NCBI GenBank assembly: GCA_964247055.1 | Contig: OZ176055.1 | Coordinates: 806,001 to 870,000, forward strand | DNA from: Paragordius varius | Taxonomy: Eukaryota; Animalia; Nematomorpha | Reading direction: 5' to 3' | DNA length: 64,000 nt | Shown: positions 9,439-62,114 of the stretch, piece after piece | How positions within the stretch are numbered: position 1 is the first letter of the stretch | Layout: every line of letters begins with the position of its first letter | Notes under the pieces: generated by a model | Databases searched by the model: none | Told to the model about the DNA's origin: nothing | The model's input: the letters and a program-made list of their open reading frames with translations, nothing else | Translations under genes and position numbers: made by a program

Positions 9439-10621
9439 TAATTGTCAGCAAAATCATTGGAATTTTACAGTTTTGTCACTTCTTGTTATAACTCATTTTG
9501 GCTCCGATCAATTTAAACAGTCACTGCAAAACTTGTCCCAATATGATACATATGTTCCGTAATATGCTTCTATAATTCAATGTAAGTAACAAAAATAAAA
9601 ATTTCACATAGGCTAACAGATGATTATGTATGATGATGGATATCCCCCCTTAGTTTAAATACAAAATCTGGGTTTTTTGTTGCAACATATCTGTGATGTT
9701 TCTCTAATTTTTTGAATCTAAGCTAAATATCGTATCTTAGGACTTCAATAATTTCTAACCCCTTCTAATGGACCTGAATAGTTAGTTCATTTTGCATGGC
9801 TACATTCATTTTTATGTTTTAGCAAAAAAATCACCTGACATTTAAAATTTAAATATCCCCATTGACTTTTCACATATATTTTAACATTTAAAGTTTTTAT
9901 TTTGTGCGTACTTGCTATAATCTTTTTTGAATTTATATAAAAATCAACCTCTTTGTGCATAATTTTATTTTATTCAAATAATCATTTGAAAAATAAATAC
10001 TAATATATATTTTACACTGTATTAGTTACACCCTTTATTCGGTTATTAAGCATTTTCTTGTTATTACCGCGCACAAATGATTTTATATCCCGCTCTAAAA
10101 ATTATTTTCTAATGACTCATCTCGACATAATATTGTAAATAAATATCTATGATTATACAAAGCTATATTTTAACTACAAGTTATCGATATTCGTATAATA
10201 CATAGTTAAAATTAAAAATAATTGGAATTTGATATCATACAAAAGAAGGACTAACTTTCAACATTTATAATTTATAAAATTACAAACGTATTCACTACAG
10301 AATCTCTATTTAAAATGCCAAGCAAATTGTATTCATTTAAACCAAGCCATTTTAATAAGGTTAAAATGAGTTATTAGGACTGAATAAAAAACAATACACG
10401 TACGTTTAAATTTAAAAAGTTTTTTTTTTGTTCTTTTTACCAATCAACCAAAAATTTAAACTAACCACCTATATAAAAACATTTATTAAAATTACTTACT
10501 TTTGAACCGTCTGTATAATGATGCCAAGTTTTCCAAAATTTTAAAAATACAATAGGAAAAAATGTTGAACTGTAAATGACCTTTAAAACTAAAATTTTTG
10601 GAAGAATAATATGATTTGTGA

Positions 10622-10712
10622 ATCGCCCGTTAAACCCGATTTGTTAATATTTCGTGGAGAAGCATACAAAGTATAGCTTCTAAATTCTAAACAAATTCGG
10701 ATCTACAGGGTA
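10622..10712 (-). ncRNA. mir-10: microRNA mir-10 precursor (5p mature 10712-10691; 3p arm about 10644-10622)
   Basis: Minus strand reads TACCCTGTAGATCCGAATTTGT, the canonical miR-10-5p. A complementary arm ACAAATCGGGTTTAACGGGCGA follows 46 nt later. It lies 3' of a Hox5-type gene on the same strand, the conserved position of mir-10. Confidence 0.95.
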
Positions 10713-10895
10713 ATTTGCAAAACAAGGATGGAAAAATTATTTTTTGCGTTAATTAGTTAAAATGAAAATCAATTATAAAACTGTTTGCAACGTTTGCAAA
10801 ATATTTATTACTATTCATTATATATAATAAGATAATCGAATAATTTTGATGGCAAACAAAATAAAACTAATCATCCTTACTTTATCCTTCATGAA

Positions 10896-13552: not shown

Positions 13553-14968
13553 CTATGATTTATTATCCTTTTTCCATTTCATACGTCGATTTTGGAACCA
13601 AATTTTAACTTGGCGTTCCGTGAGTCCCAGCAAGCTTGCTATTTCATATCGCCTCCTGCGTGTCAAATATCGATTAAAATGAAATTCTTTCTCCAATTCT
13701 AGCGTTTGATGTCTCGTGTAAGCCGTACGACACTTTTTAGCATCGTCATCTATGATAATAATACAGGCAAAAATGTTAAAATGTTTAGATTTCATAGTTT
13801 AACAAGTCTTAGATAATATAACTGATATATGTGCGTTTAAATTAACAAAATAATCGAAAATCTACACGTTTCGAATAATATAAACTGCCCTTTCTAAAAT
13901 TTTAACATAAAATCCTTATGTTTTGCATTATAAATATTTTGGTTAATATCTTTTCCCTTTTTTCGTACATGACTGTATGTATAAATTTGATAAAACATCA
14001 ATCATACGATTCCCCATAATTTAAACATATCACATCTCTCATATGCAACGTTCCTTTTCTCATTAGGCATATTTTGTTTTGCTAAATATTTTTTGTTTTT
14101 ACTGTATACATGAGACTTAAAAACGTCAGTTAAAGTAGTGTTTCAAAGAGTTTACCACTATACTATTCATTAAATTTGTAAGAAAAATATTTTGATCAGG
14201 GCCAAAATGGTATCATAAAAAATAAAGTTAATGTAAACCATCAAACAAATTGGCAGAATTTTGATTAATATTGGCATTCGTAGCAGTTATTGAACTATTA
14301 TTATTGCAATGGTATTTTTTATTATTTGCGGTTGTTGAGGGATGATGCAATGAACTGTTACCATGTATTTTAAGCATCCAAGGGTATATTTGTGTCGTCT
14401 GTTTCATATGAATGTTATTAAAAGTCTTGGAGATATTAGATTTTGAATTTGAGTTTTTCCTACTGCCTTTATTGACACAATTGGTCGTCTCAACATTATT
14501 TAAAGCGTCGTTTGATGCATTAGATGATAATGACTCATCAACAATTTCCCCATCTAAATGAGTTGATAATTCTGAGCTACTTTGCTGAGATTCATCATTT
14601 TCTCCATCTTCGAGAGGGTTTTCATATGATGACATATTTTGATTATTTCCAATAACATCATTGCTGATGATCTCAGATTCTAAAGTTGAGTTTGCATTAC
14701 CGGTGTGATAGGTTGTAAAAGGTTCCTGGATTACATTTAGTTGAGAATTAGTATAGTTATTGAAATTGTATGAATATGTTGGTGGCATAAAGTAGGATTG
14801 ATAATTTGCAAAAGGGTGTGATGGTTTATTACCATTTGGATTTAACAGTGTTGAATTTGAGTTAGAACTTGACCAAAAATAATTGGTATAAGCTGAATAT
14901 AAATTGGATGGAATTGAATAATAGCCTGCAGAATTGTTTTTATCTAGAGCCTCAGTTATATCATTCAT
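13553..14968 (-). CDS. Scr: Antp-class Hox protein, Hox5/Sex combs reduced type, 308 aa; exons 14968-14239 and 13749-13553
   Basis: Hexapeptide [11 protein letters not shown] resembles Hox5/Scr QIYPWMxKxH. Homeodomain [61 protein letters not shown] phase-1 GT-AG intron (G|GTTTAC...CATAG|AT) joins the two ORFs in frame. The Hox call is certain; the paralogy group is inferred from motifs plus mir-10 position. Confidence 0.9.
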
Positions 14969-60950: not shown

Positions 60951-62114
60951 ATGTCGTATGATGAGGATCAGGAATTTTCTTACAAAGAACTTGAGCCCGT
61001 TCTCAATAAATATGTCAATTTTGCCATACCACTATACATTGAAATGTTGGAAAAACATAAATATAACCTCCATAAATATCGGAAATTTTTCGACTATAAC
61101 CGTATAAATAAGGAACTTATTAATTCACGCACCACAGTATTACAATTAAAATATGAACTTGTTGAATTGGATAATCTTAAATACAAAGTAATTGACAAGG
61201 ATTATCAATTGTATGATACAAAAGTATCGGCCACCAAACAAAATGCGCTTAAAGCCTTAGCCATGTTTGATGAGTTTTTGTATGTCCTTAACTCCTTGAA
61301 TCCAACCAATATGTCAAATCAATCACATCAATCCAATGATAGTAATGGGAATGACATGAGTAAATCAGAATATACCTTAAACGCAGACGAAACATCAAAA
61401 GCTCAAACTATGCATTTAATAACACAATCTATGATTGAAAAACCAGGAATATTGGGCGATGATAGTCTCGATGATTTCGAAGCTGTATTACGTCAAAATG
61501 CTCAACAATTACAAACTTTACACAATGATTTGGATGATGTTAATTACATTTTTCGACATTTAGCCACCATAGTTGAATCCAGCGGTGAAAAAATTGATGC
61601 AATCGAAACCAAAATTGAGGACGCAACTCAAACCACGACACGCGGAATACGAAATTTGAGTCAAGCTCTAAAATTTAAAGGGACTCTTTATCCCATTATG
61701 GGAGCTGCCATAGGAACGGCTATAGGGGGTCCTGTCGGTCTGTATTGTGGTCTCAAGGTTGGAACTTTAGCGGCCCTTGGAGGAGCTGTGGTCGGTAGTC
61801 AAGGAGGTGTGTTAATCAAACGAGTCATCCTTAAACGCAGGGAAAAGAATACTGCAATGACAACCCAAATATTATCTCGAACTGCAGATAATGATGATAA
61901 TAAAAAAAATGACAAACAAGAAAAAGAGACGAATGAATTAGGGGGAAATCCTTTCATAATAGATCCTGACATCCCATCTGATACCAAAGAACTTGTAGAA
62001 AAAACGAAGGGAAAGGATTGGAAAAGCGTTTTTAGTTTTGGCCGTAATAAGAAGTCAAGTAACGCAGACGGTTCTAAACAGTTAACAATCAATAATAAAT
62101 TACACGAGGAATGA
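60951..62114 (+). CDS. Stx17: Syntaxin-17 (autophagosomal Qa-SNARE), 387 aa, single coding exon
   Basis: N-terminal LEPVLNKY..AIP...EML.KH and TVLQL match the STX17 Habc region. SNARE helix DLDDVNYIFRHLATIVESSGEKIDAIE. Gly-rich hairpin TM YPIMGAAIGTAIGGPVGLYCGLKVGTLAALGGAVVG. Confidence 0.93.
   Translation: MSYDEDQEFSYKELEPVLNKYVNFAIPLYIEMLEKHKYNLHKYRKFFDYNRINKELINSRTTVLQLKYELVELDNLKYKVIDKDYQLYDTKVSATKQNALKALAMFDEFLYVLNSLNPTNMSNQSHQSNDSNGNDMSKSEYTLNADETSKAQTMHLITQSMIEKPGILGDDSLDDFEAVLRQNAQQLQTLHNDLDDVNYIFRHLATIVESSGEKIDAIETKIEDATQTTTRGIRNLSQALKFKGTLYPIMGAAIGTAIGGPVGLYCGLKVGTLAALGGAVVGSQGGVLIKRVILKRREKNTAMTTQILSRTADNDDNKKNDKQEKETNELGGNPFIIDPDIPSDTKELVEKTKGKDWKSVFSFGRNKKSSNADGSKQLTINNKLHEE

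Follow-up and report, generated by a model that had tools for sequence, protein, structure and literature searches.

A mir-10 locus with a lengthened hairpin beside a Hox5-like gene in the hairworm Paragordius varius

According to MirGeneDB 3.0, some animal groups show no apparent upper limit to the loop length of their microRNA (miRNA) hairpins, and this freedom is not tied to the number of Dicers (PMC11701709). Hairpins of conserved miRNAs have been lengthened repeatedly in invertebrates (Javad-zada et al. 2025, PMC12553114). In that work, 42 nt between the arms is taken as the vertebrate maximum, and sponges, Schistosoma mansoni and Seison present the species-wide exceptions (PMC12553114); in Seison nebaliae, hairpins reach a mean of 117 nt (PMC12256650). 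Experiments indicate that long hairpins need a paired extension together with an unpaired patch near the dicing site, the patch probably being an internal platform for Pasha/DGCR8 (PMC12553114). Elongated hairpins are poorer substrates of human Microprocessor, and homology tools miss loci of this kind (PMC12553114). Hairworms are mentioned in none of the literature on long hairpins that we examined (PMC11701709, PMC12553114, PMC12256650); Gordionus sp. is included in MirGeneDB 3.0.

Our present results concern a mir-10 locus in Paragordius varius, found in a stretch of 64,000 nucleotides (the window; C6:806001-870000 in assembly coordinates). Lengthened miRNA hairpins are known as a class in invertebrates, and the locus belongs to this class. 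An initial annotation of this DNA took about 60 nt as the usual size of an animal pre-miRNA. The precursor is indeed long by the usual animal standard, but 60 nt itself is a vertebrate-centred norm (PMC11701709, PMC12553114, PMC12256650). We propose that the locus is, with high probability, a genuine, single and functional mir-10 gene of the MirGeneDB Mir-10-P1 type, located at its ancestral place downstream of a Hox5-type gene, that its 5p arm serves as the guide and that the growth of its arm spacing is lineage-specific. As a mir-10 orthologue, it adds to the record of a phylum that has been poorly sampled.

The mir-10 hairpin and its Hox neighbourhood

The minus strand of the window carries an exact match to the canonical miR-10-5p (Table 1), and this site is the sole match in the 110.5-Mb assembly (44 contigs) when up to three mismatches are allowed. 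The canonical 5p arm described in the initial annotation is thus confirmed, and the second, short-looped mir-10 copy that was considered there as a competing source of reads did not appear in the genome search. The predicted 3p arm is separated from the 5p arm by 47 nt (46 if the 5p arm is taken as 23 nt), which gives a precursor of 91 nt (10712-10622), in agreement with the previous estimate of about 90 nt. The 136-nt stretch 10735-10600 (minus strand), whose folding had been recommended as a check, forms a single hairpin of -32 kcal/mol. Its shuffles reach -18.8 +/- 3.1 kcal/mol (z -4.2), and none of the 200 folds as well; G+C content of the window is about 25%. In this fold 18 of the 22 5p positions are paired with the predicted 3p arm, on top of a basal stem of about 10 pairs. 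The antisense (plus) strand folds with a large open bubble across the duplex region, and an antisense miRNA is not favoured for this reason.

Table 1. Features of the mir-10 locus and of the neighbouring Hox gene, in window coordinates
Feature	Position	Strand	Remarks
First-exon open frame, Hox5-like gene	14228..14968	-	IYPWM hexapeptide; hexapeptide block common to Gordionus
Homeobox exon, same Hox gene	13553..13795	-	Open frame; stop 2.8 kb upstream of mir-10, same strand
Basal stem, 5' side, below predicted Drosha cut	10713..10724	-	From the fold
miR-10-5p	10691..10712	-	22 nt; canonical and identical to the Gordionus orthologue
Predicted Dicer-excised region	10644..10690	-	47 nt; MFE structure: one extra closing pair, 4 x 3-nt internal loop, 4-pair helix, inner stem-loop
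Inner near-perfect palindrome	10658..10681	-	6 + 4 pairs, one bulged U, 3-nt loop
Predicted miR-10-3p	10622..10643	-	Seed AAAUCGG, the canonical one minus one U; 19 of 22 positions as in Gordionus
Basal stem, 3' side	10612..10621	-	From the fold
Flank block conserved with Gordionus	10600..10610	-	Contains CNNC motif 10604-10601

In both hairworms, mir-10 is located beside a Hox5-like gene on the same strand (13553-14968, minus, in the window; L038:10001-11338 in Gordionus). Its two exons were searched separately. Among named proteins, the homeodomain is matched best by Hox-B5, Hox-A5 and Sex combs reduced. A protein word search returned no match for the first exon and only short fragments for the homeobox exon, none of them labelled as hairworm. 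In a large HMMER search with the homeobox exon, the best single-homeodomain match is P0145 from Gordionus sp. m RMFG-2023 (isoform P0246). The two Hox proteins share 12 of 13 residues of the hexapeptide block and a homeodomain 85% identical, including lineage-specific residues; the rest cannot be aligned. Of 5.8 billion proteins, one alone is homologous to a syntaxin-17-like frame at 60951-62114; it too comes from Gordionus sp. m RMFG-2023 and has 44% identity. Because the Hox protein aligns only in the hexapeptide and homeodomain, and because of the low identity of the syntaxin-17-like frame, the Paragordius genome is apparently deeply diverged from that of Gordionus.

A survey of Nematomorpha reported duplicated Dfd and no Hox5 (PMC11603191); the gene linked to mir-10 may, to judge from its sequence, be the missing nematomorph Hox5. 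An Antp/ftz-like Hox gene, with LYPWM and a homeodomain ending in KKEK, is situated 3.3-4.8 kb before the start of the window (L037:5227-6800; C6:801227-802800, plus strand) and is transcribed towards the mir-10/Hox5 unit. With this convergent Antp-like Hox as the next gene, mir-10 has not kept its ancestral order on the Hox4 side.

Comparison with the Gordionus orthologue

The orthologue in Gordionus sp. m RMFG-2023 (region L038 of GCA_954871325.2, OX940787.2) has the exact miR-10-5p at L038:16135. It too lies downstream of the Hox gene on the same strand, at a distance of 4.8 kb against 2.8 kb in the window. Its hairpin folds with -37 kcal/mol (z -4.5). The 5p arms are identical in 22 of 22 positions and the 3p arms in 19 of 22, including the seed, while 47 nt between the arms and a precursor of 91 nt stand against 22 nt and 66 nt in Gordionus. 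In both worms the basal stem pairs, although its sequence is not the same, and four basal pairs have changed on both sides in an alignment of seven sequences. A flank block (10610-10600) is common to both, and its CNNC motif starts at +18 from the predicted 3' Drosha cut here and at +17 in Gordionus (L038:16217-16220). Unlike the two arms, flanking sequence is saturated between the window and Gordionus.

The inner stem noticed between the arms in the initial annotation is present, with 10 pairs at 10681-10658. It is more stable than most of its dinucleotide shuffles (z -2.5; 6 of 300 equal it). Among random 47-nt pieces of the window, 5% fold as well as the loop does. The 47-nt extension is 43% paired. 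A small internal loop (4 x 3 nt in a single MFE prediction) follows one pair beyond the duplex and adjoins the predicted dicing site. The inner stem has no counterpart in the Gordionus loop: pairwise alignment opens one 25-nt gap, which takes in the palindrome's right half, and the leftover loop bases show no recognisable relation. By parsimony against outgroups, which have about 13-17 nt between the arms, the 25-nt extension including the inner stem is apparently recent, not conserved and arisen in this lineage. Since the two halves of the palindrome are almost fully complementary, it may have arisen recently through inverted duplication or insertion at the site. Origin from a mobile element was rejected, as the palindrome has no other copy in the genome at up to three mismatches.

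The history of the 3p arm is different in age. The arm starts with CAAAUCGG here and with CAAAUUCG in 15 of 15 comparison loci, so that loss of one U turns the canonical seed AAAUUCG into AAAUCGG. The comparison set consists of 15 invertebrate mir-10 loci from metagenomes, retrieved with a pattern ending in GTT, which excludes vertebrate (including human) mir-10a; none of them looked human. Their arms are 13-16 nt apart, except in L008, where alignment gives about 17 nt (its hairpin was missed by the long-segment fold). A scan of metagenomes with the 5p arm combined with the hairworm 3p motif found nothing. The initial annotation had proposed that the 3p seed is unusual and that 3p targeting has changed or been lost. 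The seed change is real, a one-base deletion relative to all comparison loci; loss of the arm itself is contradicted, since the altered seed is common to Gordionus and the arm is largely identical there. By this comparison, the one-base change is older than the split of the two lineages and has been kept, and orthology does not depend on AAAUCGG, which is a lineage variant. Gordionus thus dates two events, an old, shared change of the 3p seed and a recent, lineage-specific extension of the loop. All positions of the 3p seed pair with the invariant 5p arm, and 3p function is therefore inseparable from structural constraint.

As for arm use, the 5' base is U on the 5p arm and C on the 3p arm. 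Four 7mer-m8 sites for the 5p seed are located within 222 nt (C6:7082943-7083164, plus strand; L039), 430-650 nt downstream of a Gbx-like homeobox at C6:7082517 on the same strand, probably in the 3' UTR of that gene. For reference, both strands of the 64-kb window together contain three such sites. Sites for the 3p seed are missing from the same stretch downstream of the Gbx-like gene, and near the Hox genes no 3p cluster comparable to the 5p one was found. The four-site cluster and the CNNC motif at +18 lend support to a working, 5p-guided miRNA.

Arm spacing across conserved miRNAs of the genome

Sixteen deeply conserved mature sequences were searched in the assembly and three loci from a scan with the Rfam mir-10 model (RF00104) were added; all 13 loci with a credible star arm are reported, on the basis of folding, not of reads. 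The arms are separated by 15 nt in mir-125, 22 in let-7, 24 in mir-100, 36 in mir-34 (weakly paired, 14/22), 45 in mir-1, 46 in mir-10, 49 in mir-9, 60 in mir-7, 77 in mir-184, 86 in mir-219, 106 in bantam, 119 in mir-124 and 172 nt in mir-87. The spacing thus ranges from 15 to 172 nt with a median of about 49, ten of the 13 loci have 36-172 nt, and the clustered mir-100, let-7 and mir-125 keep 15-24 nt. The length comparison with other conserved miRNAs of this genome, recommended in the initial annotation, consequently turns against its own premise that the long loop is special to mir-10: most precursors are lengthened, and mir-10, at about the median, is by these folds typical of the genome and no outlier.

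The added stretches are AT-rich and show secondary structure, with z between -1.3 and -6.7 in the seven long regions scored (mir-34, mir-87 and mir-219 not among them). In most long loci, fold prediction places an internal loop one to three pairs past the predicted dicing site. Five of the 13 loci have a CNNC motif starting at +16 to +18 (background 4.9%, P 2.6e-4), and two more have one at +19. Those at the canonical +16 to +18 are the motif of mir-10 in the window and motifs in L002, L027, L032 and L035. Nematomorpha are the sister phylum of nematodes. Nematode pri-miRNAs are reported to be without features of the CNNC type; in hairworms this determinant appears to be in use.

Domain searches detected one Dicer locus (C4:9128416-9148774; Dicer_dimer and two RNase III matches) and one further RNase III locus (C4:7780464-7781894), which probably codes for Drosha, both counts being lower bounds. 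No genome match at up to three mismatches was obtained for miR-8, miR-71, miR-993, miR-133, miR-2 and miR-263/183, which may reflect a reduced set, as in other parasites, or divergence. Exact mature matches exist for miR-10, miR-9, miR-7 and bantam. Mature let-7 (L002:1636-1657) differs from the near-invariant sequence at positions 10-11, and miR-100 is diverged too. A possible mir-7 paralogue with a changed seed position (L026; C3:7830771, plus strand) forms a 185-nt hairpin with 22/23 positions paired and 111 nt between the arms; as uncertain, it was excluded from the survey. Three-mismatch matches at L022, L024, L033 and L034 lack a hairpin and were treated as chance.

We tentatively consider this hairworm lineage a further, undescribed case of genome-wide lengthening of conserved miRNA precursors, a reading that we hold somewhat less probable than not, with one Dicer detected and CNNC retained. 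For mir-10 at least, the lengthening would have followed the split from Gordionus. If true, this lineage would present a natural system in which to ask what allows Microprocessor and Dicer to cope with long hairpins. The combination of lengthened hairpins, one detected Dicer and kept CNNC could also bear on the question of why some animals limit the length of their pre-miRNAs and others do not.

Lengthening has a consequence for annotation. Rfam leaves the mir-10 locus undetected in a scan of the window at gathering threshold, in a scan of a 551-nt region at E <= 10 and in a whole-genome scan with RF00104; only the mir-100/let-7/mir-125 cluster was recovered by these scans. The Gordionus hairpin reaches 35.4 bits (E 7e-7) with RF00104, whose gathering threshold of 47.5 is an operational criterion, not a biological one. 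As the loop extension is the main difference from the Gordionus hairpin, loop length is probably the main cause of the failure of the model at the Paragordius locus. An extension of 25 nt would thus probably suffice to hide a perfectly conserved miRNA from the Rfam covariance model.

Alternative readings, proposed processing and relation to known systems

The loop and the 3p arm each invite an alternative reading. The inner stem-loop could be a selected functional module that either binds a regulator of processing or yields an additional, loop-derived small RNA. Its helix is indeed more stable than most shuffles, and paired extensions matter for biogenesis of long hairpins (PMC12553114). Nevertheless, we consider such a role very unlikely: the 22-nt loop of the Gordionus orthologue is unrelated in sequence and lacks the module, about one in twenty random pieces of the window folds as well, and similar extensions at nine other surveyed loci leave a role specific to mir-10 unsupported. 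The inner stem with the adjoining 4-pair helix amounts to about 14 pairs, which falls short of another Dicer duplex of about 22 nt, and the inner stem is not conserved; the loop-derived small RNA envisaged in the initial annotation is therefore unlikely. The altered 3p arm, for its part, could be a functional guide that acquired a new set of targets in the hairworm stem lineage, a case of arm-specific neofunctionalisation. Two very divergent hairworms share its seed and 19 of 22 positions, and switching of arm use between lineages is documented in the mir-10/100 family (PMC3049427). Structure alone, however, can explain this conservation through pairing of all seed positions with the 5p arm; a cluster of 3p sites was found neither near the Hox genes nor behind the Gbx-like gene, and it is the 5p arm that begins with U. 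A guide function of the 3p arm is thus possible but improbable in our opinion.

The same lengthened loop could also mark a weakened or decaying gene, whose processing suffers from the insertion and whose perfect 5p arm is a remnant. Poorer handling of elongated hairpins by human Microprocessor (PMC12553114) would fit with it, and the conserved miRNAs for which the genome has no match make miRNA loss in this lineage possible. Both arms have nevertheless stayed nearly unchanged since Gordionus despite saturated flanks, basal stem and CNNC motif are kept, the locus is the sole mir-10 copy in the genome, and the four-site 5p cluster persists behind the Gbx-like gene. Moreover, ten of the 13 surveyed loci, mir-10 included, have at least 36 nt between the arms and cannot all be dead. 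Decay is accordingly the reading to which we give least credit, and a functional, 5p-guided mir-10 gene with a recently extended loop is preferred.

We infer expression, cut sites and arm choice at mir-10. In the processing that we propose, Drosha/Pasha would cut about 11 pairs above the basal junction, and the small 4 x 3-nt internal loop, following a miRNA duplex of about 23 pairs, would stand in for the terminal loop. The sole detected Dicer would then measure about 22 nt from the cut end and release the 5p/3p duplex, with the 47-nt stem-loop discarded as a by-product and the 5p arm used as the guide. In the simplest view, the extension itself would stem from AT-rich sequence that was recently inserted or duplicated in inverted orientation on the spot, a near-neutral event, and the same kind of growth may have taken place at most conserved miRNA loci of the genome. 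The one-base change of the 3p arm would be the earlier event, preceding the split from Gordionus.

The locus is like bilaterian mir-10 genes (Mir-10-P1; RF00104) in its identical 5p arm with the seed ACCCUGU, in its place in the Hox cluster downstream of a Hox5-type gene and in its hairpin with a basal stem. The closest known relative is mir-10 of Gordionus, with the altered 3p seed common to both. It differs from other mir-10 genes in the spacing of the arms, which is 47 nt here, 22 in Gordionus and about 13-17 in the invertebrate comparison set of 15 loci, and from that set also in the one-base deletion of its 3p seed.

Among lengthened hairpins, the locus resembles the extended ("giant") ones, for example dipteran mir-989, mir-375 and let-7 of Daphnia and lepidopteran mir-12 (PMC12553114), in having more than 42 nt between the arms, an extension predicted to be partly paired, a predicted unpaired patch by the dicing site and extension sequence unconserved between relatives. 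Unlike them, its extension is modest, 47 nt and not hundreds, and it is accompanied by lengthening of most conserved miRNAs of the genome, whereas the giant hairpins belong to single outlier families (PMC12553114). In this respect the hairworm is closer to the species-wide cases: its median arm spacing of about 49 nt (13 folded loci) compares with 62 nt in Seison nebaliae, 34 in Schistosoma mansoni and 68 in sponges, the usual value being about 15 nt (PMC12256650; PMC12553114). As in Seison, Schistosoma and sponges, mature arms stay conserved; unlike these, the present case comes from a different phylum, that of the hairworms.
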